Assembly: GCA_964035545.1 (NCBI GenBank) | Contig: OZ037770.1 | Location: 3,132,662-3,196,661, forward strand | Length of the DNA stretch: 64,000 nt | Direction of reading: 5' to 3' | Source: Bugula neritina | Lineage: Eukaryota; Animalia; Bryozoa | Shown here: positions 9,511 to 49,652 of the stretch, piece by piece | Layout of the letters: every line of letters begins with the position of its first letter | How positions within the stretch are numbered: position 1 is the stretch's first letter | The notes under the pieces: model-generated | What the model saw: the letters and a program-made list of their open reading frames with translations, nothing else | The model's database searches: none | Told to the model about the DNA's origin: nothing | Translations under genes and position numbers: made by a program

Positions 9511-9770
9511 AGGGGAGAAAATAAACAGAAAGAGGGGAGAAAATAAACAGGAAGAAGAGAGAAAATAAACAGGAAAAGGAGAGAAAATAAACAGGAAGAG
9601 GAGAGAAAATAAACAAGAAGAAGACAGAAAATAAACAGGAAGAGGGGAGAAAATATACAAGAAGAGGGGAGAAAATATACAAGAAGAAGAGAGAAAATAA
9701 ACAGGAAGAAGAGAGAAAATAAGCAGGAAGAGGAGAGAAAATAAATAGGAAGAGGAGAGAAAGGTGAGAG
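9511..9770. repeat. Purine-rich minisatellite (21-23 bp unit, GAGAAAATAAACAGGAAGA core)
   Basis: About 11 direct tandem copies; explains the F/S/L-rich spurious ORFs at 9391-9815. Confidence 0.9.
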
Positions 9771-11026: not shown

Positions 11027-14000
11027 TCAGCTTATAGCATCTGCTTTCAGCTGGTACTCCTGTGCTTTTCCATATTCACCCATTTCCTCATATACAATTC
11101 TGATGTGTTTATAAGAAGTAGCGATGTGTGGATGTGTAGCCTCACTGCCATAGACAGCTAGCCCCATATCTAATGACTTAGTATAGTATTCTAGTGCCTT
11201 GCTATATTCACCCATGCCGCAATACACAAGACCAATATTGTTATATGAAGTAGCAATGTCTGCATGTGTAGCCTCACTGCCATAGACAGCTAGCCTCATA
11301 TCTAATGACTTAGTATGGTATTCTAGTGCCTTGCTATATTCACCCATGTTGTTATACACAAGACCAATATTGCTATATGAAGTAGCAATGTGTGCATGTG
11401 TAGCCTCACTGCCATAGACAGCTAGCTCCATATCTAATGACTTAGTATAGTATTCTAGTGCCTTGCTATATTCACCCATGTTGTTATACACAAGACCAAT
11501 ATTGCTATAAGAAGTAGCAATGCTTGCATGTGTAGCCTCACTGCCATAGACAGCTATGTACATATCTAATGACTTAGTATAGTATTCTAGTGCCTTGCTA
11601 TATTCACCAATGCTGTAATACACAAGACCAATATTGTTATAAGAAGTAGCAATGTCTGCATGTGTAGCCTCACTGCCATAGACAGCTAGCTTCATATCTA
11701 ATGACTTAGTATAGTATTCTAGTGCCTTGCTATATTCACCCATGCTGTAATACACAGTACCAAGCTCACCATAAGCACTAGCTAAGTCTACATGATTTGT
11801 CTTCCCATGTACAGCAATATACATGTCACATGACCTGTTCATATAAAGCAAAGCCTGATCATAAAGACACATATCTCGATACACTCCACCAACTTGGAGA
11901 TAACATGAGGCTATATCAGGATGAGCACCTTGTACCTCTCTACTAGCTCTTTCTATATTCAATTGTCTAGCCTTAGTACCTAAGTCTATAGAAAACTTCC
12001 CCATTTCTCCATGAAGTTGGGCCAGTATTGGAATGTCTTTAATCTCATTAAATATGTTTTTAGTCATTTCTAAAGCCATTGCATGATATTTGAGTGCAAG
12101 CTTTTCTTTTCCCATCTCACTATATACTCTACCATAAGCAGAGTGTATGTCTGCAATGTCTATGTGGGTGGTCTCTGCTGTAGCCTGTGAAATCTTAAGA
12201 GCTGATTTGAGACTTGAAAGGGCTGAGTCATAATCCCCCATAAGGCAGTGAAGGAGCCCCACTTCCACCAGTAGACTAGCTTTTTCATGATTACCTGCTT
12301 CTATGCTATCATATATGTGTCTAGCTGTATGATAATTACTGAGTGCTGCATCATAGTTTGACCTTTTGACTTCCAGAGCTGCCACATCTCTATAACACTG
12401 AGCAACACTGCCATGATGAGTTGTGGTGTACAGGTTCTCTGTCATATACAAAGCTCTGCTATAGAAATGCAATGACATTTCATAGTCTTCAATATTTTCA
12501 TAAATTAGTCCCAACCCTCTCAGTAGTATTGCAACATCTGGGTGATCAACACAGTCAGTGTGGAGCTCTACCAACTCATCAAGGTACTGAGTCAGGTACT
12601 GTATACCTCTCTCATGCTCTCCTTTCTCCGAATGTATTAAAGCTAATGATACTATCAGCTCAATGTAATGGCTATCAAGTCTTTCCTGTTTGTCAACTGA
12701 GTGCAGCCTGTCAAAAACTGTGAGGGCAGAATTGGCCATTTCCTCTGCTTGTATGTAGTTCTTTGTGTTTTTACATGCTTCACTGAGGACTCTGAAAGCT
12801 TGTGCAGTGAGTTCAAACCATCGCTTGTCTTCATCTGGAAGTTCAGAGCTTGTAGACATCTTTTTTACAAACCTGAACAGAGTTTGCCCTTTACTCATGT
12901 TAAACTTGGTCTTTAGAGTAGAGTAAACATCTCCAAGCAGTGAAAATACATTCGTATAGTTGTGAAGTTTGTTAGCACAATCTGTGGCCAAAATCTTCCA
13001 CTTCAACACATCAATTGGAGTTTCTTTAGAATTTTTGGCCAGCCAAGTAAAATATTTCAAAGAGAGCTGGAAATTTTGTGAAGAATATAACAAATAGGCT
13101 GCCAGTTCAATAAGTTGCTGGGAAGTTTTTACTTCCTCTGAGCCACTACTTAACAACTTTGACGTTTCTGATTTGTTTTGGTTGAGAGATTTTTTTACAG
13201 TCTTTGCAAATGAATCAGGTCTCTCAGCAAATATTTCTTCACCACAGTTGGTTCTTATGGTTTTTATTGCCTGTTCATAGGATCCACAGAAGTACTCAGC
13301 TTCAGCTTTTACCATAAAAGATGAACTCTGCACATTTAAATTGCTTACTAAACGCTTCATCACATCAACCTTGTCTGTTGTGTTTAGACTGGTTAGTGAA
13401 ACAAAATTTTCAGCAATGCACAATTTGAAAGGAACAATTGTGTAGATCATCAGGATGAAAATATCAGGCGATAAGCAGTAAACTTTTCTGTTTGATTTTG
13501 CTGCAGGATACAGTGAAAATTGATCTTGCTGAGATTGTAGCTGAATACAAGCTGCTGTCCTTATGTATATAGCTAAAGCTGATACTAAGTTTAGTCTGAA
13601 ACACTGTGCATCATCTATATACCCACATTCTTTCAGTTTCTTATTTACCAACCAAGGTTTTGTTTCAGAAAATCCTAAAAGCAGTCGGAGATGATCAACC
13701 AAAAGTGTTGGGTATCGAAATAATTCGGACTTCACTTTAAGCTGGGTGTTGTCTGGAGGCCCAAAAGACTCAAAACTAGGTTGGAAGTTATATGTATTCA
13801 CATCATTTTCTAGTACTGCTAATCGCTTTTTTATTAGCAATGCGCTCGAGCTTTCTTCTGCTAAGATTTTATGAAAACTTTCTTTTACTGTTTCGTAAAG
13901 AGCATTACCACTTTTATGGGAGTAAACCAACACTGAAGAAGAGAGAATGTCACCAATATCTGCTGTGTCACCAGCAGGTGAACACAACGCTTCCCTATAC

Positions 14001-14900
14001 ACACAGGTTAACTGCTCTGGCATCAGGATCAAGTTCTTAGCACCATCACCTCTTCCAGTAGGGATATTCCCTGCTTTCTTTGATATGCCATCAATGTGAA
14101 ACCCAACAGTCACATCATCATTGTAGGACTTGTCTATCTCAGCAATATCAAAGGTTTTCAAGGGAGATTCTCCCATGTTCCCTATTCTAAAGTAACTATC
14201 AACAGCTAACTTAGTAAAGTAGTCCATGTGACTGTCAGACTCCACAATGAAGGCATATTCTAAGTCAGAGTAAGGAGTGGCTGTACCACGAGCAACAGAA
14301 CCCAATGCAATCACAGCAAAAGAACAAGGATCCTTCAAACCTAACTTACTAAGATTATCAACACTTGACTGCATAATGGACGCACAGACTGAAATAAATC
14401 GGTTACTACATTTTTGACTTAGTTTAAATACAGCATCAGAAAAGGAAGACAGTTGATCCTTTGAAGGGTAACTGTCAAGGTTTAAATACTTTGTATCAAT
14501 AGAGTCAAAGTCATATTTAGTTTCATCTCTGTACTCTCTGAGTAGCTGTAAGTGTTTGGTTGTTTGCTGCTCATGTTCCTCATATGTAAGTGGATGCCTA
14601 CCTTTGTACCAGCTATCTTCTATATCATAGACTTTACGCTTTCTTTCTGCTGTGAATTCTCTGGCAAGACATCTGTTGGCCAACCCATGAGCCTAAGTAC
14701 AATACCACAATATTCGTTATATTCATTATACATGCCTATCACAAACAACTTTGAGACTCAAGTATAGTAAGTATGTACATTAATTAGTCACCTATACACA
14801 CCTTAAGGTAAGGCACCCAGTCACCATTTGAGTCTCTTGCCTCATTCTGGTATTTCTCTGTCAACTCATCCAACTTCTCAATGTCTCTATAGCTCTCCAT
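11027..14900 (-). CDS. Nucleotidyltransferase (DUF294/GlnD/GlnE-like, pol-beta fold) + helical substrate-binding domain + TPR-repeat protein, about 1254 aa
   Basis: Two coding exons: 14900-14802 (MESYRDIEKL...WVPYLK; in-frame TAA two codons upstream of the ATG) and 14692-11027, joined by a 109-bp phase-0 GT-AG intron. NTase signature FAVIALGSVARGTATPYSDLEYAFIV (GS-x-DxE), candidate third acid in GFHIDG, DUF294_C-like helices (KVKSELFRYPTLLVDHL; LKECGYID...LAIYIR), then roughly 12-13 TPRs. Confidence 0.9.
11030..11794 (-). repeat. Coding tandem array of 132-bp (44-aa) TPR units, 6 units with a near-identical core
   Basis: Units start at 11794, 11662, 11530, 11398, 11266 and 11134; consensus HAxIATSYxNIGLVYxxMGEYSKALEYYTKSLDMxLAVYGSEAT. 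Confidence 0.95.
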
Positions 14901-16100: not shown

Positions 16101-16432
16101 GCCTAGGGCCACACGGTGCGTATTTTCTCATGCGAAAATTGAAATCACAAGTAGCAAAGGTGTCCACTGTGCGCGTTGAGAAAACATTAGCACTTGTCGC
16201 TCAGCATTTTCAACGCAAGTGCGAATCGTCACCTAATTGGCTGGTAGTTATTCAGCGAGCCCAATTTCTTTATTTTAGTGCTACATTCCAGTAAATTGCG
16301 TTTTATTGAAAACGAGTGCGACTTAAAAATGAAAGCTTTATTTATCACGCATCACTGACGCTACAGTGGACACCTTTGCTACTTGTGATTTCAATTTTCG
16401 CATGCGAAAATACGCGCCGTGTGGCCCTAGGC
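16101..16432. mobile_element. PIF/Harbinger-type MITE, 332 bp
   Basis: Near-perfect TIRs of about 70 bp (gcctagggccacacgg...gtgtccactgt / acagtggacac...gtggccctaggc) flanked on both sides by TTA. Confidence 0.9.
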
Positions 16433-26073: not shown

Positions 26074-26254
26074 CTGTGAATATCAACATGATTATTATTA
26101 TAATTATATTAACATCTTATTCAAGATGATAAGATCATTATATTGACAAAACAGTTTTAGTAGCAGCAGGAAATATAGCAGTGAAATTACTAGTGGTAGT
26201 GGCAGCAGCAGTAGAGGCTAAGTTTAAAAATTGTTGAATTAACAAGTGCGAATA

Positions 26255-27710
26255 TGTAATAACTACACTATAATACGTGTAACCATGTAATATCTACACT
26301 ATATTATGTGTAACCATGTAATAACTACACTATAATATGTGTAACCATGTAATAACTACACTATAATATGTGTAACCATGTAATAACTACACTATAATAC
26401 GTGTAACCATGTAATAACTACACTATAATATGTATAACCATGTAATAACTACACTATAATATGTGTAACCATGTAATAACTACATTATAATATGTGTAAC
26501 CATGTAATATCTACTCTATAACATGTGTAACCTTGCAATAACTACACTATAATATGTGTAACCACGCAATAACTACACTATAATATGTGTATCTATGTAA
26601 TAATTACACTATAGTATGTGTAACCATGTAATAGCTCCACTATAATATGTGTAACCATGTAATAACTACACTATAATACGTGTAACCATGTAATATCTAC
26701 ACTATAATATGTGTAACCATGTAATAACTACACTATGATATGTGTAACCATGTAATATCTACACTATATTATGTGTAACCATGTAATAACTACACTATAT
26801 TATGTGTAACTATGTAATAACTACACTATAATATGTGTAACCATGTAATATCTACACTATAATATGTGTAACCACGCAATAACTACACTATAATATGTGT
26901 ATCTATGTAATAATTACACTATAGTATGTGTAACCATGTAATAGCTCCACTATAATATGTGTAACCATGTAATAACTACACTATAATACGTGTAACCATG
27001 TAATATCTACACTATAATATGTGTAACCATGTAATAACTACACTATGATATGTGTAACCATGTAATAACTACACTATAATATGTGTAACTATGTAATATC
27101 TACACTATAATATGTGTAACCATGTAATAGCTACACTATAATACGTGTAACCATGTAATATCTACACTATAATATGTGTAACCATGTAATAACTACACTA
27201 TAATATGTGTAACCATGTAATATCTACACTATAATATGTGTAAGCATGTAATATCTACACTATAGTATGTGTAACCATGTAATATCTACACTATAATATG
27301 TGTAACCACGCAATAACTACACTATAATATGTGTATCTATGTAATAATTACACTATAGTATGTGTAACCATGTAATAGCTCCACTATAATATGTGTAACC
27401 ATGTAATAACTACACTATAATATGTGTAACCATGTAATATCTACACTATAATATGTGTAACCATGTAATGACTACACTATAATATGTGTAACTATGTAAT
27501 ATCTACACTATAATATGTGTAACCGTGTAATGACTACACTATAATATGTGTAACCATTTAAAAACTATACTATAATATGTGTAACCATGTAATATCTACA
27601 CTATAATATGTGTAACCATGTAATAGCTACACTATAATATGTGTAACCATGTAATAACTACACTATAATATGTGTAACCATGTAATATCTACACTATGAT
27701 ATGTGTAACC
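26255..27710. repeat. 31-bp satellite (TAATAACTACACTATAATATGTGTAACCATG), about 47 copies
   Basis: Continuous tandem array with recurring variant units. Confidence 0.97.
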
Positions 27711-30918: not shown

Positions 30919-33650
30919 TTAGTCTGCTAGTGTTTCTCCCGTGCGTAGTTCACGGGCTGTTCTAATGAGGAAGCTATGCAGGAAATTATTAGTATTACAG
31001 GATATTGAATTAAAAGAGTTACTGTCCCCAATATTGGTATTACGGAGAGATTTCATGGAGTTAAGAGTGTTAATTAGGTTAGGGAAGAATGCTTCATGCT
31101 GCAACACTTTGAAGAATAGCGTGAATCTGTGTTCTTGTCTGGATTTATTTAAAGCCTTTAAGTTTAACTCCGCCTTGGATTCGGTCACTGAGACATCCCA
31201 GCCTTTTAAGTTTTTTACAAAACGTACTGCCTTGTTTTGAACTTTCTCTAGATTGTTGCTTAGCATGAGATGTGCAGGATCCCAAATTTCGCAGGCATAC
31301 TCTAGAAGCGGTCTACACAGGGTAGTGTATGCTATGAGCTTAACTTTAACTGGAGCATCATAGAGTACATTTTTGATTAATCCTAAAATACGCATTGCTT
31401 TATTGACTACTGAGTTTATGTGATAATCCCACTTTAGATCATGTACCAAATAGATTCCTAGGTATTTTACACAGCTACTTTGTACTAATTGTTCGTTGCT
31501 CAAATAATAAGTGTGCGTTATAGGCTTAGGGCTTTTATCAAACACAATGATGTTGCTTTTTGTTGCATTGAATTTCATGGAGTTTTTAATACTCCAGTTG
31601 TGTAGAGCGTTAAGGTCATTTTGCAAATTTTCCTTGTCTTCGTCTTTAGATATATGCGTATATAGTATAGTGTCATCCGCGAAGAGCCTTACAGTGCAGT
31701 ATTTTACACATTTAGTGATGTCATTAATGAAAAGTGTGAAAAGTGCAGGCCCTAAAACGCTACCTTGAGGGACACCTGAAGTAACAGCTACAGCATCAGA
31801 TTTGTGGCCTTTAATCACCACTCTCTGAAAACGACTGGTTAGAAACGAGGATATCCATTTTACTAAAAGAGGATTTACTTTGTACTCAATAAGTTTCTGA
31901 ATCAACAGATGATGGGGAACTAAATCAAAGGCCTTAGAGAAATCTAGCACTGCCGCATGTGTAGCCATTCCATTGTCCATATTACTCAATATGTCATGTG
32001 TTAGGCAGGCCAATTGAGTTGTGCAAGACAGGTGACTTCTAAAACCATGCTGGTTTATGGACAGGATATCATTCAATTTGTTTTGCATAAGGTGAAGTAT
32101 AATGTGCTCCATCATTTTACAGACTATTGATGTTAAGGATATTGGTCTATAGTTAGAGGGCAGCTCACGATTTCCTTGTTTGAATATTGGGGTGACATGA
32201 GCCAGCTTCCACTCTGATGGAAGTGTACCTGTTGTTAATGTATAGTTGTAGATGGAAGCTAATAGGGAAGAAATAATTTCAGGGGAGAGCAGTAGCTTTT
32301 GTTTGCTAATAGAGTCTGGCCCTGAAGCTTTACCATTTTTGAGAGACTTAATCAATTTTAACACACCTTCAGAAGTTACTAATATGTTATCTGCATCAGT
32401 TGGAGCCGGAGCTTCTGGGAGCACACATGCTGGTGTAAAAACACTGTGAAAATACAAGTTCAAAGTATTTGCAATGTCAGATAAATCATTAGAGCTGGTC
32501 TTTTCACTAATTTGAATGCTTTGAATACTGTTATTGTTGCCTTTAATTTCTTTAACATATCTGTAAAAAGGTTTCGAGTCTCCATTTGCCAATGGGTAGT
32601 ATAACTTTTCACACATGAAGTCTTTTTTGAGTATTTTAAATAGTTTTTTGTTTTCACGCCTTAGTTTTTTGTATTTGTCAAATAAAACAGAATCACCTGT
32701 GAGCTTGTATCGTGAGTAAAGTTTTCTTTGCTTGTTGCAAGCTTTTTGAGCATCTTTATTAAACCAAACAGGTTGAAAATGTTTTCTAGGTTTAAATTGC
32801 TTTTTAGGTACATGGTCAGTTATTGCCGAATGTAATCCATTTCTAAATGTAGACCAAACAGTATCAATGGGCTGTATATCGTTTATTAGAGAGTTCACTT
32901 CTGAGAGCAAGGCTGCCATTGAGGAATCAAAACCGTTTCTATTTATTTTGTGATACACAAAAGTATAACTATCTTCTACACTTTCTTTAAACTTTTGGGG
33001 TGCTTCTATTGAGCATTCAATCATAAAGTGATCACTGACACCTGGTTGGATTACATTTAAGTCGCAAATTAAATGTTTAGAATTAGTGCAAAGAAGGTCA
33101 AGTATATTGCCAGCTATATGAGTTGGCTCATTAACAATTTGATCCATGTCTAATTCCGATAACAAATCTATGAAGTCATTGTAAAAAGATCTCCAACTGT
33201 TAGAGAAAGTGAAGTCATTCCAATTGATGCCAGGTAAATTAAAATCGCCAGTTAGAACTATTGTTGACCCTGGAAAAAGTTTTTTGATTTTTGACATGTA
33301 ATCTACAAGTGGTTTAATGTTGTATGTTGAAGGCGGTCTGTAGTATGTTACCAAAATATAAGGAGCTACGTTAGATTCAAAATTAAACTTGATTGCTGTT
33401 ATTTCTGCTTCAGATGGTATATCTATTGGAGAATGTGAGATTTGCGAATTAACAGCTATTAGTACACCCCCTCCATATTCATTCCTATCTTTTCTGTAAA
33501 CCAGTTTGTTATTTGGATGGAAGATTTGAGCATTAGCATAGGATGGGTTTAAATGAGTTTCAGTGATAGACATCACATCGTAGTCAGAAGCTATAGCTTG
33601 TAATTCAGCAATTTTACCTTTGATTGATCTTGCATTGATGCTAATTAATC
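30919..33650 (-). CDS. LINE ORF2: apurinic endonuclease + reverse transcriptase, uninterrupted
   Basis: APE motifs ISINARS, ITET, YRPP, GDFN, SDH; RT motifs NYRPISL, DFSKAFD, GVPQGSVLGP, LFADD, KYLG. The NARS motif lies upstream of the first ATG. Confidence 0.95.
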
Positions 33651-36296: not shown

Positions 36297-38968
36297 ATGG
36301 AGAAGTCAATAGTGCCTGTAATAGACTTTACTGCTGGACAGTCAATACCAGGAGATGCAGCACTGCTATGGAAGACAACTCCTGAACAGATATCACTGGC
36401 TGATGACATAATAGCAGCATTAAAGACTGTAGGATTTATCTGTCTGGTGAACACAGGAATAACTCAAGACGAGGTAATATACAAGTAGTGTGCAGGTGTT
36501 TATATGAAGCAGATTAGAGAGAATGTCATATAGTATGTAACTCTGTATTTATTGTTAATATTTATGAGTTTTGTTTATATTTCTATCACCATTGCAGAAG
36601 TCACTTTCAACTGTATGAAGCTGCATCCAGGTGTCAGCAGGCGCTCTGTAGTGTATATGTACAGGTACTCCCAGGTGCTAGCAAGTGCTCTGTAGTGTAT
36701 ATATACAGGTACTCTCAGGTGCTAGCAAGTGCTCTGTAGTGTGTATATACAAGTACTCTCAGGTGCTAGCAGGTGCTTTGTAGTGCCTATATATACAAGT
36801 AATCCCAGGTGCTAGCTGTTCCTCTGTAGTGTATGTGTACAGGTGAAAATTGTTTCAATATACGATACTTTATTTCGTCTACTTCATGCTTTTAGATGGA
36901 CACATTGATGAACGAAGTAAAGCATTTCTTTGGCTTGGGAGGAAGTGAAAAGTGTTTGTACACAAAGGGACTGATGAGTAACACAGGATGGGTGGATGTT
37001 GGACGAGAAACTCTCTCTACTGATAGAAAGGCAGGGGACTACAAGGAAACTTTTAACTTTCAACCAGTAATGGCAGAAACAGTGAGTTTGTAGTGTAAAA
37101 TGTGTTCATTGTCAGGTTTATAGTGTGTACTGAACATTGGTACAAATATGAGTGTGAATTGAAATCTTTCATGTATGACATAGTCACTTTGTATTGTAAT
37201 GAATATCTATAATTTTTGCACACAATGTCCAGCATAATATTATTGTTTGAAGTTTTTATCGTTTCGTTTCATTATTTTAAAAATTAACAACTTCCAGACT
37301 GAGAATGTAAAGAGTGAGCCTTTGCTATTAATATTTTACACTTTCTCTAGGAAATACCAGATTCTATGAAAGTTCTCAAGGAATGGTGGGGGAGACTGTC
37401 TACCCTCTCACTGCAGTTCATGAAGCTGATGGGCCTAGGTCTAAGACTGAAAGAACCGTCTTATATAGCAAATTCTCATAACTTTGGTTCCTCTCAGAAC
37501 GAGTCGGCTATTCGAGTTAACTTTTACCCAGCCACTCTCAACAAAGGTGAGATTCCTAAGCTATATTTTACTCGTTGTATGTACAACACACATTCACACA
37601 TACTAAGAGTAACAGTATAGTTGTATATTCTGTGTATATAATAGAACAGACAGTGTTACTTTAGTAAACCATATTTTAGTACAATATTAACATCAACATA
37701 GTATATCATGTATATGTAGGAATCTTGAGATGTTTCCTTGAACACTAAGTATAAGGATAAGATTTACATCTGTTAGTTATGGTATTGTATACAATATATT
37801 GCATGTGTGAATGTAGTTTCAAGTGTGACATCACTTCCTATTCAACCAATCAGATGAGCTAACAAGATTGCTTGTTCTGTGAATGTAGACTTAGAACCTG
37901 GCCAAGTTAGATGTGGGGAGCACAGTGACTACGGCTCCGTTACTTTACTGGTTCAAGATAGCCCTGGGCTAGAGGTTCGTATTACATAATACTTGTATGA
38001 GTTAGTTGTGCCTGACCTCTACACAATGAGCTCTGAATTCTATCATATTTGTTAGTTTAATTTACTAACATTTAGAAGTTATCTTTCCTGCTTGTAGTCT
38101 CTGTGTATTATATTATACCAGGTGATGAATAGATCTACTGGAGAATATGAGGCAGTGACAGCTCCCCCTGGTGGTATTATTGTTAATATTGGTGATGTAA
38201 TGCAGTTCTGGACGTCAGACACTCTGGTTGCTAATGTAAGTTCCACAGTGTGTTATATTGAGAAAACAAACCCATCAATCTACCATACAACTGTATTCTA
38301 TAGACTGAGTTCTGGGATGTGTTATATTGAGAAAATAAACAAGGAAACTTTAGTCTAGACTGGGTTTGTCTTCGCATTAAAAATGCTCTTTGCTCTGTCA
38401 TACTAACTAGTGATGTCATACTAACTAGTGATGTCATACTAATTAGTGATGTCATACCAACTAGTGATGTCACACTAACTAGTGATGTCACACTAACTAC
38501 TAATACCAATAGTTAAAAAGACAGCAAGCAAGCTCTACCAGGTTATGTTGCTGGTTGCATATTTTATTGAACACAATTGAAGAGCTACTCCACTGGTAAC
38601 CTTGTCTATGTGATAAACATAATGTTTCTGCTGTGAATTTGGTTCAAGCTTTGCTTTGTTGCAATTTTATAGAAAAACTCTGATGGAAGAAAGTCAAGTT
38701 TGACTTAAAATTTGTAGAATGCAGTATTTCCAGGAACTATTCTCTTTGTTCCCTGAGAACTGTTTATGTTTTTCAGAAGCACCGAGTGTTGGTGTCAGAT
38801 GACATGCACCTGCAGGAGGCTGACAGAGTTTCTATCCCATTCTTTGCTATTCCAGACCAGACCACACTAATAGAATGTCTAGTGGGGCGCTCTCAGTATC
38901 CCCCTGTCACTATGCATGAATGGCTGAAACAGAAAATAGACTCTGCTTTTAAAGAACGACAACTCTAG
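36297..38968 (+). CDS. 2-oxoglutarate/Fe(II)-dependent dioxygenase, isopenicillin-N-synthase-like family (DIOX_N + 2OG-FeII_Oxy), 316 aa
   Basis: Six phase-compatible GT-AG exons: 36297-36473, 36896-37081, 37351-37546, 37889-37974, 38122-38235, 38777-38968. Motifs VPVIDF, VGFICLVN, GDYKETF, NFYP, HSDYG (HxD), NIGD, HRV and RVS (RxS). Confidence 0.95.
36626..36845. repeat. Intronic minisatellite, about 44-bp unit x5 (CAGGTGCTAGCAAGTGCTCTGTAGTG...)
   Basis: Five direct copies in intron 1 of the dioxygenase. Confidence 0.85.
38396..38498. repeat. 18-bp tandem repeat (GTCATACTAACTAGTGAT), 5-6 copies
   Basis: Direct copies in intron 5; produces the spurious SMTSLV ORF. Confidence 0.9.
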
Positions 38969-39467: not shown

Positions 39468-42400
39468 TGTAACTTATAATTATAATATATCGACAGCCCC
39501 AAGCTGTCACCGTGACCTCCAAACCGCTCCTTAGTCACTCCAATCTCCACCGTGATCTGCCCAGTAAATCACCGTATTCACCCAGAATACAATGACAAGA
39601 ATGCTGACTTTGCTAAACTCTCTAATAGATATAAATTTTGTCAGTCGAACACTGTTGCGCGATAGAAAAGGGTCTTTTGTTTCGCAGCGCAACACGAGGC
39701 AAAATCTTTGACTCTTGCTGTGTACCTAAGCACTCTATCTTGCTACACCGTTAACGGCATTGGCATACTTACAGCCCACATCTCCTTTAGCTTCTTGCAA
39801 AGCTACTAGGGGGACGCCATGACCTCCGGCCAGTCAACATAATGATTCAAGTACGCAGGTCGCCGCCGCACACGTTGCGGCCGTCCATGATGGATCAGCG
39901 GCACATCTGCATTTTCGCTCTCCTCAGCATTGGCTCCAACCTGTTCGGCGGGGCGTTCTGGACACCTTACACCTTACATCGGGTTGGGCTAGGTCTTCCC
40001 AAATGGCATACTGATCCGCATTGGCCTCCTCGTCAGGCTTCTCAATCAGCACTAACGGCAGATCTCCTGGAGGTCCAGCATAAGGCATTTGCTGATCATC
40101 AACATGAGCAGCCCGTCGACACAGCCATATCAAAGACGCAAGGTCCGTTCGTAATCTGAACGTGCGTCCATAAAGGTATGGTCTAAAGTGTTTCACCGCC
40201 TTGACTACTGCCAGGAGCTCTCTCCTGGTGGTACAGTAGTTCTTCTCAGGCGCCGACAGAGCCTTACTTTAGTAAGCTACCACCACCTCGCAGTCATCTT
40301 AGACCTGAGACAGCACAGCCCCCACATTATGGTTACTGGCATCAGTATCCAAAATGTACTCCTTCGCCGGATCAGGGTATGCCAAGATGGCCGCCTCTAC
40401 CAAACGATCCTTGAGGTGGTCAAATGCCTGCTGTTCTGTATGCGTCTACTGCCATCGCACCCCTTTTGCTGTCAGCTGGTTTAGTGGCTGCACAATTCCT
40501 GCAAAGTCTGGTATGTACTGACCGCAATTCAGGGAGGTCGACAGGGACGGCCCAGTCCCTCACAGCCCGTACTTTCTCGGGGTCGGTGGCGACCCCGTCT
40601 CGACCAACTACATGGCCCAGGTACTTAACCTCGCGTTGCAGTAATGCACACTTCGAGGGCTTGAGCTTCAGGCCCGCAGCTCGGAGTCTGCCGAACACCT
40701 CCCTGAGTCGACTGACATGTGTGTCGAAGTCGGGGGAGATGACGATGACATCATCGAGATAGATGAGCAAGGTCTTCCAGTGCAGTCCACTCAGGACCTG
40801 CTCCATGAGTCGCTGGAAGGTGGCTGGTGCGGACGTAAGTCCGAATGGCAACACCTTCCATTTCCAGAGCCCATCTCGCGTAATAAACGCGGCCTTGTCT
40901 TGTGCATCAGGACTCAGAGGCACCTGCCAATACCTGCTTAGCAAGTCCAACGTACTGAAGAACTTGCTACCAGCTAAGGCATCTAGCGACTCATCGATCC
41001 TAGAAAGAGGGTAAGCGTCCTGGATGGTCACGCTGTTCAATTTGCGATAATCTACGCAAAACATCCAGCTCCCATCCTTTTTCCGAACCAGGACAACTAG
41101 AGAGCTCCAAGCACCATGGGCTGGCTCAATCAGGTCCCGGTTCAGAAGGTCTTGCTCCTGTCGGCTCACTCCCTTTTCCTTCTCAGGACCTAACCGGCGG
41201 GTCGGCTGCCTGATAGGCACCATCCCAGCCGCCAGGGGTATCTTATGACAGACAGCCTTCGCTATGCCCATGTCATGATCGCCGCAACTGAACACATCCT
41301 TGTACTCAGAGAGTAGCTGCGCCACTACCAAGTGTTCTCGTTTACTCTCACAGCCATCACAGGCATCTCCGTATAAATCTACCAAGTGTTCAGGCACCGG
41401 CCTCCTGCCATCCGTAGTGAGTACCCGTCGAGCCTTGTCCGCTGTTTCCAGGGCTGGCCCGACATCCTCCTCCTGTATGGAGTGGAATTTTCCCACTAGT
41501 GACCCAGCCAGAAATTCTACCGGCTCCGTGAAAAGATTCACACACTGGACCAGGAACTCCCCCAGCTCATCCAGTCTATTCAGACAGTTAGCGAGCCAGA
41601 CGCCCCCAGCGCACCTTCCAACACTCCTAAATTTGAGATTTTCCTACAGTTCACTCTGCAGTGAACTGTAGCCCTAGAGCGCCCAGGTACAGTACAGCGC
41701 TGTACCACCTGCACCTCCCCCACCAAGAGCCGGCCAAATCAGTTGACACAGGCCAGCTCACGCCCGACCATCACTACCGCCGACTTATTAAAGTCAATAT
41801 GGCACCTGCGTCGCTTCAGAAATGGCATGCCCAAGATGGCATACTCCTTGAGTTGACTGACGATGAAGGTCTCGCTGATCATCTGATCACGGACTCTACC
41901 AGTCAGCTCTATCACACCATAAAAAGGAATACATGACCCGTCCGCCAACGTGCCGTGTTCCCCTTCATATGGCTCTAGGTTAGCCCGGTTCCTAGCACTG
42001 AATGTGTCAAACAGACGCCAGTTCAGAAGATTTGTGGTACACCCAGTATCTAATAGGAAGGTGGCAGCTTTTCCGGCAAGTTTACCGGGGAGGAAATAAC
42101 TGCTCCCATATGACTGGGCGCTCACTGAGCGATTCGTCTCTGGAGGTGCATGGAGTTGGGAATGCATCTGTGCTTTTCGGTTGCGAGGGGGTTGTCGACG
42201 TTTCGTGGGCAAACAGGTTACATCTCGGTCTTGCTCACACACAGACGGCCTAGTGAATGCTCGGTCTTGCGCTCGTGTGGGCAACCGAAGGAAATCCCTG
42301 TCTCGCTCCCACTCGTCGTGCACTCCTTCATCAGGCAAACCTTCAAAGCGGTTTTTGAGTGCCCAAGCCGAAGGTTTTGGCGGGCCTTGCGGCCTGCTAA

Positions 42401-47270: not shown

Positions 47271-49212
47271 CAAGTTGTTGAACAATTGAATTTGATGGCT
47301 GTTACTGTTAGTGTTATTCACTTATTCACTATTGTTAAGTGTTAAGTCTAAGGCGTTAACGGCTGGGAGTGGGTCTGGTGTCGTCGTCCATTTATTAGTA
47401 CTACTGGCACAAATGCAATGCATGTGACGACAAGATATTTTTTGACTTCTAAAACCATCATTTTGCAATAGCTGCATTAACATACCTGCCGCTGGAACTT
47501 CGCCTTCGTCTCACAAGTTTGCTCCACTGCAAATAGCTTGTCTATGCTGATTCACTTAGCTAACGCGACGCTTGTTTCAACTTTCAAATTAGTAAACATC
47601 ACCCAATCAATGATATGTGTTTGTGAAACTGGCCAATGACCGATAGTGAAAGCAAGTTTGAGCGAGTCAAACTTTACTCTTTGCTTTTTATGGAGCATTT
47701 TGCAAGTTTAGTAAAAGAGCAGCCAACTCCGAATTATTAAAACTACTGAACAATAAACCTAAATGATGTTCATGACATTTCAATGAATGCAGCAACAATG
47801 GAAGTTTTGGTTTGTGTTGTTTTGTCATAGTACCCACTATGCTGTGCGAATTTCTTGTCAGTGTTACATGCTTTCATAATATTTTAGAACATATAATAAT
47901 ATTATTCATATAAAAAACAATTTGAAAAAGGAATTTCCAATAACAAAATGGAATTTACAAATTTTCATAGCCAAAATTTAACATCCGATCTTAGGTAGCT
48001 GGAGACGCAATTGGAGACGCTCGCATATATTAGACTATAGAGGTTTACACACTTATTCTAGCAACCTTGACCTGTCATTTGCTTTTGCTCGCTGCATGGT
48101 AGTCTTTCCATACGAACGCCTTTTAAAAAGGCCTTTTAGACTGTAAAAATTTAGAATGACTCTTCTTGACATCACCAATAAGTGTGATTGGAATCCATAA
48201 CTTGTTCTATAGTAGGCTCTGTAATGGTTAGACAACTGCTAGCAGTTTAAAAGGCATTCTTATGGAAAGACTTCCAAAAATATTTTGTAGGTCACTATAT
48301 TCAAAACTAGGTCACTTTAATACTAGTTATATATAGGCTTTATGTTGTGGGTTACAGTGACTGATTATGCAATATTGACTAAAATAATTTTAATAAATTA
48401 AATATTTACATGCTTGCATGTTGTTTTAGCAATCATAATGTAGAATGTACATCTTTTAAGCATATTATAATATATAGTTAATAATATAGTATATATAATT
48501 AGGCAAAATATGCATAAAAAAACTATATCATTTAAATTTACAATATATCTGAGACAAAAATTAAACGGCTGCAGTTTAACTTTTTTTTTCAATATACAAA
48601 ACATTTAGGCTATAAAAGTAAAATATATCTAAAATATTGCTAACTTCTACTTAACAAGTATAACTTGGTTTGTGATTGTCCCAGGTTTCTGAGTGGCTTA
48701 CATCATAATGTCAAAGGTCATGCTACTTATCTTAAAGCAAGTGTGCAAAGTACTTATCCACTCATCCTAACACATTATAAAGCTTTCTTCTCATATATTA
48801 TGGTTGGAATGCTACTAGCTATAAACTGCTTTCTATATACCAGTTCATAGTAAACTTTTAAGATTAATTACCAATAAATTATGTAATTGTTTTCATCAAT
48901 TAACAATTATTAATTCAAATTGAATACAATTGATATGTTCATTACATTCATTCTGTGCTATACTCAATCTTCATTAAATTATCTGTGTTAGCCTGTGGTA
49001 TTGGTAGCCTGTGTTCTAAACTTTATATATAAAATTATTCTAATATACTATAATATCTTCTATAGTACTTTGTAGTCTCATATTTACACTGCTCTATAGA
49101 GCACAAAGGCTACTCAGGTTTATAGATGCAGAAATAAAATTTTCAAAAATTGTTCGAGATAAAATTATATACTGTGTTTAAAGGTTTGCAGATCAGGCTG
49201 CATATTTTTATC

Positions 49213-49652
49213 ACAATGTTACTATAGTTACTGGTAGATCTCAATGTTACTATAGTTGCTGGAAGATCTCAATGTTACTTTAGTTACTGGTAGATCTCAA
49301 TGTTACTATAGTTACTGGTAGATCTCAATGTTACTATATATAGTTGCTGGAAGATCTCAATGTTACTATAGTTACTGGTAGATCTCAATGTTACTATAGC
49401 TACTGGTAGATCTCAATGTTACTATATATAGTTGCTGCGGAAGATCTCAATGTTACTATATATGGTTACTGGTAGATCTCAATGTTACTATCGTTACTGA
49501 TAGATCTCAATGTTACTATAGTCACTGGTAGATCTCAATGTTACTATAGTTACTGGTAGCTATCAATGTTACTATAGTTACTGGTAGATCTCAATGTTAC
49601 TATAGTTACTGGTAGATCTCAATGTTACTATAGTTACTGGTAGATCTCAATG
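49213..49652. repeat. 28-bp minisatellite (ATCTCAATGTTACTATAGTTACTGGTAG), about 15 copies
   Basis: Head-to-tail copies with no unique spacers. Confidence 0.95.

Follow-up and report, generated by a model that had tools for sequence, protein, structure and literature searches.

A homogenised TPR array with hypervariable codons in a nucleotidyltransferase-TPR gene family of the bryozoan Bugula neritina

A hallmark of the NLRs that act in fungal allorecognition and immunity is an array of homogenised repeats in which the contact codons are hypervariable. Highly internally conserved TPR, ANK and WD repeats have been described in these proteins (the HET-E/D/R NWD family, and the NB-ARC-TPR proteins of Podospora), with the same regime operating in the TPRs (Dyrka et al. 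2014, PMC4986451); internally conserved repeats of the fungal-NLR type have been reported to be rare in animals, at 0.8% (PMC4986451). A related case is that of the Ectocarpus NB-ARC-TPR and ROCO-LRR candidate receptors, whose clustered, fast-turnover, variable repeat modules are under positive selection (Zambounis et al. 2012, PMC3341825). For the Ectocarpus TPR-like exons, SWAPSC detected no positive selection, and PAML did find positively selected TPR exons (PMC3341825). Lineage-specific enzyme-plus-TPR expansions devoid of a NOD have also been reported in marine invertebrates, namely the TPR-CHAT and glycosyltransferase-TPR families of corals (PMC12314368) and the cGAS-TPR fusions of oysters (PMC8195603). 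Per-codon diversifying selection in homogenised repeats is not among the results reported in the accessible portions of these last two papers.

The array analysed here lies on the minus strand of a 64,000-nucleotide stretch of a Bugula neritina contig (OZ037770.1, positions 3,132,662 to 3,196,661; the window), at the end of a 1254-aa protein encoded by a two-exon gene. Coding exon 1 (14802..14900, minus strand), read from the sequence, comprises 33 codons; it starts with ATG and ends in ...PYLK before a GT donor. The 109-nt GT...AG intron (14693..14801, minus strand) has gtgtgt as donor and ...tgtacttag as acceptor, and its boundaries were rechecked. Coding exon 2 (11027..14692, minus strand), taken from the ORF list, is made of 1221 codons and a TGA stop, and contains the nucleotidyltransferase, a helical region, divergent TPRs and the homogenised TPR array. 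Every paralog open frame starts with AHGLAN or SHGIAN right after a stop, which fits a splice acceptor at that point, and the Watersipora homologs P0008 and P0013 have an equally short N-terminus, with ...YLQ before AHG[IL]AN. Exon 2 served as the query of all searches, and the joined product of both exons was used for the length and the Walker A scan. In Pfam, exon 2 matched TPR_12 (E 1.6e-82) and DUF294 (E 3e-6, 27.5 bits for a cut-off of 21). No Pfam match to NACHT or NB-ARC was found in the protein, nor any Walker A motif in the scan of the joined 1254 residues; without these features the protein is not an NLR. Between the N-terminal part and the array, divergent, non-homogenised TPRs (11795..12592, minus strand) were recognised by HMM scores of 11-34 bits at irregular spacing and by helix pairs in the AF2 model. 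Between paralogs they have a dS of 0.10 and an omega of 0.35, and the non-repeat part has an omega of 0.27 when sister paralogs are compared.

The N-terminal 710 residues correspond to a nucleotidyltransferase fold and helical domains, according to AF2 and Foldseek. The GlnE/DrrA/DUF294-type nucleotidyltransferase with its helical substrate-binding part spans 13343..14455 on the minus strand, roughly residues 80-450 of exon 2. When the N-terminal part was searched by sequence in PDB, PADLOC and NCBIfam, only weak matches to the nucleotidyltransferase core came up (DrrA, E 0.75; PDC-M70A, 0.003; MntA, 0.002), so that a fold search was needed to place it. The AF2 model of this region (pLDDT 84) had DrrA 6yx5_B (E 4.7e-6, TM 0.60) and GlnE 1v4a as best Foldseek matches, and the nearest atlas clusters were bacterial DUF294+DUF294_C proteins. 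In Pol-beta nucleotidyltransferases the fold goes with a G-x11-[DE]-x-[DE] motif (PMC8097203) and with one more carboxylate, on a following strand. The Bugula protein has G-x11-D-x-E (G131...D143, E145), and across an alignment of 34 homologs there is no change at G131, S132 and D143 and hardly any at E145 and D201; D201 would be the third carboxylate. The Pol-beta fold, its motif, the helical substrate-binding domain and an above-threshold DUF294 match are thus shared with GlnE, DrrA (SidM), GlnD and DUF294 proteins. Unlike these protein nucleotidylyltransferases, to which its identity is only 11-15%, the Bugula protein has a long TPR array, and nucleotidylylation is a predicted activity of it. 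The members of this group known to us are bacterial.

The array occupies 11135-11794 and consists of five 132-bp units, with a truncated sixth behind them; TRF reports a 132-bp period, 5.0 copies and 93% matches over 11109-11763. The edge unit, unit 1, lies at 11663..11794, units 2-5 at 11662-11531, 11530-11399, 11398-11267 and 11266-11135, and the degenerate sixth unit (HPHIATSYKHIRIVYEEMGEYGKAQEYQLKADAIS) at 11027..11134, where it is ended by the TGA stop at 11029-11027, all on the minus strand. A first, sequence-only reading had put the array start at 11134, one base away from the actual boundary of the unit, 11135. A codon table was drawn up in the ORF frame, codon k of a unit starting at s extending from s-3(k-1) down to s-3(k-1)-2. 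All codon values quoted by that reading were recovered from the table: GAC/AGC/CAC/GAC at codon 3, TCT/TCA at codon 7, AAC/AGC at codon 9, TAC-AGC/AAC-AAC/TGC-GGC at codons 16-17, TAT/CAT at codon 28, and AAG/TAC/GAG/AGG/GGG at codon 35 over five units. Codon 7 is indeed the only synonymous difference among the four central units. The six replacement codons listed were all real, but the list was incomplete, codons 18 (ATT/ATG, I/M) and 36 (ATA/CTA, I/L) having been missed; replacements in units 2-5 therefore fall at codons 3, 9, 16, 17, 18, 28, 35 and 36. Within these four units dS is 0.027 and dN 0.079, with a piN/piS of 2.8. Their amino-acid identity is 82-93% over 176 residues; nucleotide identity is 93% and scaffold nucleotide divergence 3.3%, and the array falls in the fungal-NLR type of internally conserved repeats (at least about 85% identity over at least 100 residues). 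Between units 4 and 5 the scaffold is identical, and all 8 nt differences fall in hypervariable codons.

The TPR consensus is a helix-turn-helix with W4-L7-G8-Y11-A20-F24-A27-P32, stacked into a superhelix. The array unit aligns to it without gaps, as Y4, I7, G8, Y11, A20, Y/H24, S27 and L32, so that codon k corresponds to TPR position k-4. In the AF2 model, codons 2-17 of each unit form helix A and codons 21-39 helix B, and Foldseek matched the array to LGN, KLC, CTPR and OGT (E about 1e-11). The repeats are TPRs, of the Pfam TPR_12 or long KLC-like type.

Where the variable codons sit on this fold was examined with AF2 helix boundaries, helical-wheel moments and the published map of TPR positions. 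Codons 3, 6, 9, 13, 16 and 17 correspond to canonical TPR positions 33, 2, 5, 9, 12 and 13, and positions 2, 5, 9, 12, 13, 33 and 34 make up the concave, most variable set of TPRs (Magliery and Regan 2005, PMC1261162). In helix A, the variability moment points 184-193 degrees away from the hydrophobic moment (P=0.014 and 0.0008). Homology thus shows the six hypervariable helix-A codons as one stripe on a predicted exposed face, coinciding with the concave ligand-contact positions, as in the specificity-determining set of the canonical TPR surface of HOP TPR1/TPR2A (PMC1261162). Codons 28 and 35 (TPR positions 24 and 31) face the hydrophobic side of helix B, where they may be semi-buried and serve packing or curvature instead of ligand contact. 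The unit also differs from the canonical HOP TPRs in its 44 residues and its longer helix B, and positions 24 and 31 are outside the canonical set. The proposal of a variable ligand-binding surface made from the letters alone is supported for codons 3, 9, 16 and 17, which match the concave set, but not for codons 28 and 35, which are left unplaced.

The foremost rival to selection is a recent duplication of units followed by relaxed constraint at surface residues, with no positive selection, the variable codons being those at which any residue is tolerated. It agrees with the predicted solvent exposure of the helix-A hypervariable codons, and with the window taken alone. There, the four central units have 1 synonymous change for about 17 minimal substitutions, compared to 21% synonymous sites (P=0.096); dN/dS is not significantly above 1, because the window's own array is too small. 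The 17 substitutions are nevertheless confined to 9 of the 44 codons (P=0.0003 for clustering). An out-of-sample test was made on disjoint nearest-neighbour unit pairs from four sister paralogs, the window's units being left out. Measured against the global synonymous rate, the six codons first listed (3, 9, 16, 17, 28 and 35) had an omega of 4.5 (P=2e-11). This value, like all our omega counts, uses Nei-Gojobori-type sites uncorrected for transition bias and codon usage, and the genome is AT-rich. The same six codons gave omegas of 1.75, 1.40 and 2.47 in three clades of this genome that are more distant, and all other codons had 0.5-0.8 in sister paralogs and distant clades alike. Diversifying selection, claimed by the sequence-only reading, thus holds at its six codons in the sister paralogs and in the three distant clades, and is short of significance in the window's units alone. 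Tested in four clades, these codons and, separately, the a priori concave set yielded omegas of 1.4-4.9, all with P<0.01.

Tree-based counts per codon in the window's clade gave a whole-unit omega of 1.58, and codons 3, 6, 9, 13, 16, 17, 28 and 35 were Bonferroni-significant, with omegas of 3.9-8.8. With disjoint nearest pairs, on which recombination has little effect, omega was 5.7 for the hypervariable codons (P=3e-17) and 0.43 for the scaffold. These eight codons, and codon 38 less strongly, are the hypervariable ones at the level of the family; two of them, 6 and 13, are constant in the window's array. The codons of highest entropy (6, 9, 13, 16, 17 and 35) recur in Watersipora and in metagenomic relatives. 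Under neutrality no site can evolve faster than the synonymous rate. Relaxed constraint is therefore at odds with the omegas of the window's clade, 4.5-5.7 with P as low as 3e-17, and with values above 1 in each of four independent clades, even though clades B and C reach only 1.4-1.8. Besides, the polar exposed face of helix B (S22, K23, E26, K30 and D33) is conserved, which means that exposure alone does not give variability. We regard relaxed constraint as unlikely, and conclude that positive diversifying selection acts at a few fixed positions on the predicted interaction surface, the helix-A sites matching the concave set and the helix-B sites being unplaced.

The gene belongs to a family of at least 55 nucleotidyltransferase-TPR paralogs, arranged in clusters in the genome. 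A profile of the nucleotidyltransferase region scored 62 matches, nearly all in open frames of 900-2267 aa. Five sister genes have 5, 6, 8, 9 and 15 repeats; L004 among the loci was completed by merging L023 and L024, and arrays extending past eight loci (L011, L013, L014, L017, L018, L019, L020 and L022) were counted in part. The C-terminal end of the window's gene is also that of L003 and L005, and L002, L004 and others continue into a longer tail, of which no remnant was found downstream of the stop within the window. The concerted evolution suggested by the first reading was found between genes as well as within them. Internal units have a dS of 0.083 between genes and 0.093 within genes, compared to 0.14 for the flanking non-repeat sequence of the same paralogs. 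In 37 unit pairs, many of them between genes, the 102 nt of scaffold are identical, and the 4-12 differences are all in hypervariable codons. We conclude that units are exchanged within and between paralogs.

These data bear on a second explanation, an old positional specialisation in which every unit keeps its own fixed contact residues for a single, conserved partner of several parts, on the model of KLC or LGN. Unit 1 behaves in this way: it is a positional ortholog across sister genes, not homogenised with the internal units, with a scaffold 0-2 nt away from that of unit 1 in L002-L005 and at least 7 nt away from internal units. The closest folds are, moreover, the TPR arrays of LGN, KLC and OGT. 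The internal units, however, have no positional orthologs and vary in number between sister genes, they find their nearest neighbour in their own gene at a frequency close to chance (0.24 vs 0.22), and identical scaffolds bear differing hypervariable residues across genes. Positional specialisation is thus very unlikely.

Targeted mutation of the DGR or deaminase kind, germline or somatic, would replace selection as the source of the variation. The changes are at codon positions 1 and 2, often both, with a fixed third base (NNC at codons 3, 9, 16 and 17, NNT at codons 6, 13 and 28), and the scaffolds around the changed codons are identical, as such a process would leave them. But a fixed third base is predicted anyway by the low dS, every one of the four bases occurs both as the base lost and as the base gained, without a signature specific to adenine or cytosine, and neither a template repeat nor an invariant template copy among the units was seen. 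Reverse transcriptases occur in the window only as RVT_1 ORFs of retrotransposons, at 30.9-33.6 kb and 40.4-41.5 kb, 16-27 kb away, and the pattern, present in a germline assembly, recurs at more than 25 loci. Such a mechanism appears highly improbable. Diversity-generating retroelement-type mutagenesis proper was rejected as a candidate, with no template/variable repeat pair, no adjacent dedicated reverse transcriptase and no adenine-specific changes found. An assembly artefact, i.e. a collapsed or chimeric array mixing paralog reads, might be feared for a repetitive array with paralogs 90% identical and short-read unitigs at very high summed depth, but deserves next to no weight given a frame open through 1221 codons, the absence of Ns, exact unit phase, unique flanks, and differences restricted to the same codons at over 25 loci, each assembled independently, as well as in proteins from another genus.

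The repeat pattern as first described is confirmed, and both halves of its interpretation, concerted evolution and diversifying selection, are supported. Compared to the fungal NLRs, to which it had been likened, the Bugula array follows the same repeat regime, but in a protein devoid of a NOD domain. Near-identical repeats of the long TPR type (about 42-44 residues), a few selected codons on the concave or interaction face, variable repeat number and exchange between paralogs are common to both. The differences are the GlnE/DrrA/DUF294-type N-terminus in place of NACHT, NB-ARC or Walker A, the animal host, and a repeat number compared here between paralogs. Clustered, variable repeat modules with fast turnover and positive selection are also found in Ectocarpus. 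There, one repeat per exon allows exon shuffling, whereas the whole Bugula array is contained in one uninterrupted 3.66-kb exon, without NB-ARC, and its selection signal is strong. The coral and oyster families have in common with ours a clustered, high-copy organisation and a variable-length TPR array joined to an enzyme domain without NACHT, and differ from it in the enzyme, which is here a GlnE/DrrA-type nucleotidyltransferase. Literature searches turned up no account of the present family or of bryozoan TPR expansions.

Our preferred reading, which we hold to be probable, is that a cytosolic nucleotidyltransferase-TPR protein from a lineage-expanded family has its C-terminal TPR array in this region, the groove being diversified by unit shuffling and selection, as in an NLR-like sensor. 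Each 44-residue unit is a helix A/helix B pair, and the units stack into a TPR superhelix. Replacements accumulate about 5 times faster than synonymous changes at fixed codons (3, 6, 9, 13, 16, 17, 28 and 35), and the scaffold codons stay near-identical among units and among the five sister genes. Such scaffolds would permit unequal crossing-over and gene conversion, by which units could be added, deleted and shuffled within and between clustered paralogs, and selection would favour new combinations of groove residues. The family would then amount to a germline repertoire of differing binding grooves, in which capture of a ligand might control the N-terminal GlnE/DrrA-type enzyme, probably through nucleotidylylation of a target (AMPylation-type). 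An immune or allorecognition role is suggested by analogy and by the expansion of the family, whose members could sense non-self (a pathogen, a symbiont or an allogeneic colony) in the manner of NLRs but with no NOD module.

Bryozoans are colonial, show fusion and rejection behaviour, and house bacterial symbionts; we know of no molecular basis for their immunity or their colony allorecognition. A more far-reaching proposal, possible but doubtful at present, is that dozens of germline genes, their grooves diversified by a combination of repeat shuffling and positive selection known until now mainly from fungal NLRs, provide these animals with a NOD-less intracellular recognition system, its effector being a ligand-switched nucleotidylylating enzyme of the GlnE/DrrA type. 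That the arrays also vary somatically, a sub-case of such a system, has a very slight chance of being true. If it existed, NOD-less recognition would be a convergent re-invention of the fungal strategy in an animal, with a previously unreported signalling enzyme. The repeat regime in any case recurs in four clades of the family, which numbers at least 55 genes, and also in another bryozoan genus, with a GlnE/DrrA-type nucleotidyltransferase in the place of the NOD. This yields concrete candidate non-self receptors, residues to mutate and a predicted output that can be assayed, target nucleotidylylation. It also offers a natural test of how TPR grooves may be re-specified through positions 33, 2, 5, 9, 12 and 13, which is relevant to the engineering of repeat proteins.

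Some minor observations were made on other sequence sources. The 90%-identity protein clusters of the relatives (P0014, P0007, P0017 and P0009), examined for allelic variation, contained too few recognisable units or differences to be informative. Logan unitigs from public runs were about 80-330 bases long, too short to span a unit or tell paralogs apart, many of them fitting two places, and their depth is summed over all paralogs. In runs X2 and X3, a 282-base skip joins 11092 to 11375; 18 letters at the joint are foreign, and a paralog is its probable source.

The TPR array of the window gene lies on the minus strand at 11794-11135, where five full units in frame are followed by a degenerate sixth one cut by a stop codon; TRF reports a period of 132 bp, 5.0 copies and 93% matches. 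A sequence-only reading had described, among the four central units (11662-11135), a single synonymous difference at codon 7 and many replacements at codons 3, 9, 16, 17, 28 and 35 of the 44-codon unit, and had interpreted them as concerted evolution combined with diversifying selection on a variable ligand-binding surface. Codon-by-codon reading showed that all the quoted codons are correct, codon 7 included, and added two overlooked replacements, at codons 18 (I/M) and 36 (I/L). The observation is real. In these four units alone, piN/piS is 2.8, and although the 17 changes are significantly concentrated, being confined to 9 of the 44 codons (P=0.0003), the deficit of synonymous changes (1 of ~17) is not significant (P=0.096), so that the window by itself is too little to carry the interpretation.

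The exon 2 protein, used without exon 1 in all tool searches, matched at least 36 genomic places besides the window. An HMM built on the window's units recovered ~190 units in strict 44-residue register at 25 loci, the arrays of loci L011, L013, L014, L017, L018, L019, L020 and L022 being incomplete, as they were counted up to the locus ends only. The window gene and its four closest paralogs (sister genes L001-L005) are ~90% identical, all lie inside 250 kb, and carry 5, 9, 8, 15 and 6 units.

Selection was measured with Nei-Gojobori-type substitution counts. For the 43 units of the sister clade, whole-unit omega (dN/dS) was 1.58. Tree-based counts put per-site omega at 3.9-8.8 for codons 3, 6, 9, 13, 16, 17, 28 and 35, that is, the six codons originally pointed out plus 6 and 13; all eight pass Bonferroni correction, and omega is below 1 at most other codons. 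As tree parsimony can be inflated by recombination, the test was repeated on disjoint pairs of nearest neighbours: relative to the global synonymous rate, omega was 5.7 (P=3e-17) at the nine hypervariable codons (these eight and, less strongly, codon 38) and 0.43 at the 35 scaffold codons. To avoid circularity, two pre-specified codon sets were then tested on units outside the window. The six original codons reached 4.54 in the four sister genes, with the window's units left out (P=2e-11); two older clades gave 1.75 and 1.40, and a distant cluster on contig C5 gave 2.47. For the a-priori concave positions of helix A, the values in these four clades were 4.94, 1.70, 2.15 and 2.71, respectively. 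These counts support the proposed diversifying selection in all four clades. In Watersipora proteins and metagenomic relatives, too, entropy is highest at the same codons. Within the family, codons 6 and 13 rank with the most variable ones (codon 13 takes 11-13 residue types), and had gone unseen because they are constant in the window's central units. At hypervariable codons, bases one and two vary, with all four bases involved in the changes, and base three is fixed (NNC or NNT), which is expected where dS is low.

For sequence outside the array, divergence between the sister genes amounts to a dS of 0.14 and a dN of 0.04 (omega 0.27). For internal units, dS is 0.093 when both lie in one gene, 0.083 when they come from different genes, and 0.027 within the window gene alone. 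In 37 pairs of internal units, many of them across genes, all 102 scaffold nucleotides are identical, and the 4-12 nucleotide differences are restricted to hypervariable codons; mean divergence is 28.5% at hypervariable codons versus 3.3% in the scaffold. The nearest scaffold neighbour of a unit is not found in its own gene above chance frequency (0.24 versus 0.22). We conclude that concerted evolution, as originally proposed for the window, takes place across a paralog cluster. The units that open the arrays are positional orthologs from gene to gene, distinct from internal units; such a set-apart edge unit is typical of arrays turning over by unequal exchange. The edge units of the five sister genes (11663-11794 in the window) have a dS of only 0.026, versus 0.14 in the flanks, and nevertheless vary at hypervariable codons (dN 0.069). 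Since few sites are involved, the pattern no more than suggests gene conversion at the edge of the array. The public sequencing runs gave only short unitigs; in two of them, X2 and X3, one contig each skips 282 bases (11092-11375), with 18 unrelated letters at the joint. The most likely source is a paralog whose 3′ end differs, not a deletion allele.

Alignment of the unit to the TPR consensus pattern needs no gaps and equates codon k with TPR position k-4. In an AF2 model (pLDDT 83), codons 2-17 form helix A and codons 21-39 helix B, while the loop consists of codons 40-44 and the first codon of the following unit; the nearest folds are the superhelices of LGN, KLC, consensus TPR and OGT. Codons 3, 6, 9, 13, 16 and 17 form one stripe on helix A, where hydrophobic and variability moments are 184-193 degrees apart (P=0.014 and 0.0008). 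They correspond to TPR positions 33 (assigned by distance to the helix start), 2, 5, 9, 12 and 13. Positions 2, 5, 9, 12, 13, 33 and 34 are the concave-face, most variable ones of TPRs (Magliery and Regan, PMC1261162), and HOP holds its peptides with positions 2, 5, 6, 9, 12 and 13 (PMC1261162). Helix B has an exposed polar face (S22, K23, E26, K30, D33) that is conserved; variability is therefore no general property of exposed residues. Codons 3, 9, 16 and 17 of the first reading are thus probable parts of a binding surface, but codons 28 and 35 (TPR 24 and 31) point to the hydrophobic side of helix B; they may extend to the floor of the groove, between neighbouring A helices, or else tune packing.

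Upstream of the array, Pfam places DUF294 above threshold and SidM_N weakly. An AF2 model of the first 710 exon 2 residues (pLDDT 84) best matched DrrA (6yx5_B, E 4.7e-6, TM 0.60) and GlnE. The AMPylase motif G-x11-D-x-E (G131, D143, E145) is invariant or nearly so among 34 homologs, and D201 nearly invariant. No NACHT or NB-ARC domain was matched by Pfam and a scan found no Walker A motif, therefore the protein is not an NLR; its repeat array evolves like that of one. The array matches the regime of fungal NLRs, whose highly conserved repeats (TPR, ANK and WD) have positively selected sites on the concave TPR face and polymorphic repeat number (PMC4986451); here the number differs between paralogs. 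The same paper found such highly conserved repeats to be rare in metazoans (0.8%). In Ectocarpus NB-ARC-TPR genes, unlike the window gene, each exon encodes one repeat (PMC3341825). NOD-less enzyme-TPR expansions exist in corals (PMC12314368) and oysters (PMC8195603), with enzymes other than the GlnE/DrrA-type nucleotidyltransferase of the present family. Our literature search found no paper describing the present family.

Exon 1 (14900-14802, minus strand) encodes 33 residues ending in PYLK and is followed by a GT donor; the intron is 109 nt long and ends with AG at 14693, and exon 2 (14692-11030, stop 11029-11027) encodes 1221 residues starting with AHGLANRCLA. Paralog open frames all begin directly after a stop, at AHGLAN/SHGIAN as in the window gene, and annotated homologs from Watersipora share its short N-terminus, so that the two-exon model looks sound. 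No hydrophobic leader was seen in this N-terminus as read from the sequence. The closest named relatives are bryozoan (Watersipora, Bugula). The C-terminus of the family occurs in two forms. The longer (L002, L004 with L023 and L024, L009, L010, L012, L020) has two degenerate TPRs after the array, then a conserved ~200-residue tail ending in LYTDI.HM.LGLYSTLTLY.D. In the shorter form (L003, L005 and the window gene), the stop falls inside a degenerate unit (...GEYGKAQEYQLKADAIS), and no remnant of the longer tail was found downstream of the window gene within the window.

In the 216 Mb genome (GC ~33%), a profile built from the 700 N-terminal residues gave 62 scored matches among 461 candidates, and the nucleotidyltransferase module is common to at least 55 genes. 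Clusters lie on contigs C6 (0.39-1.0 Mb and 2.9-3.15 Mb, the latter holding the window), C5 (6.35-6.43, 11.78-11.82 and 15.09-16.16 Mb), C2 (32.47-32.54 Mb), C7 (13.56-13.59 Mb) and C1 (28.58-28.60 Mb). Nearly all profile matches have open frames of 900-2267 residues, intact and single-exon in most; the few members with in-frame stops (e.g. at C6:404290, C5:11775744, C5:15101521 and C5:15115439) are likely pseudogenes. The C2 group and the C5 group at 6.4 Mb match the profile over the first ~450 residues only, and may differ in C-terminal architecture.

The window also holds other elements. At 16125-16400, ~1.3 kb upstream of the first coding exon, a terminal inverted repeat of ~40 bp (cgaaaattgaaatcacaagtagcaaaggtgtccactg...) around ~200 bp looks like a MITE. 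On the minus strand, a LINE-type retrotransposon (30919-33576) has an 885-aa ORF that combines an endonuclease/exonuclease/phosphatase domain with an RVT_1 reverse transcriptase, and an LTR-type fragment (40420-42338), in a GC-rich block (54% versus ~33% around), has an RVT_1 reverse-transcriptase ORF and a weak aspartyl-protease ORF. Non-coding minisatellites are found at 26254-27710 (31-bp unit, 47 copies, 91% matches), 49210-49652 (28 bp, 15 copies), 9511-9762 (22 bp, 11.5 copies) and 36627-36844 (44 bp, 5 copies).
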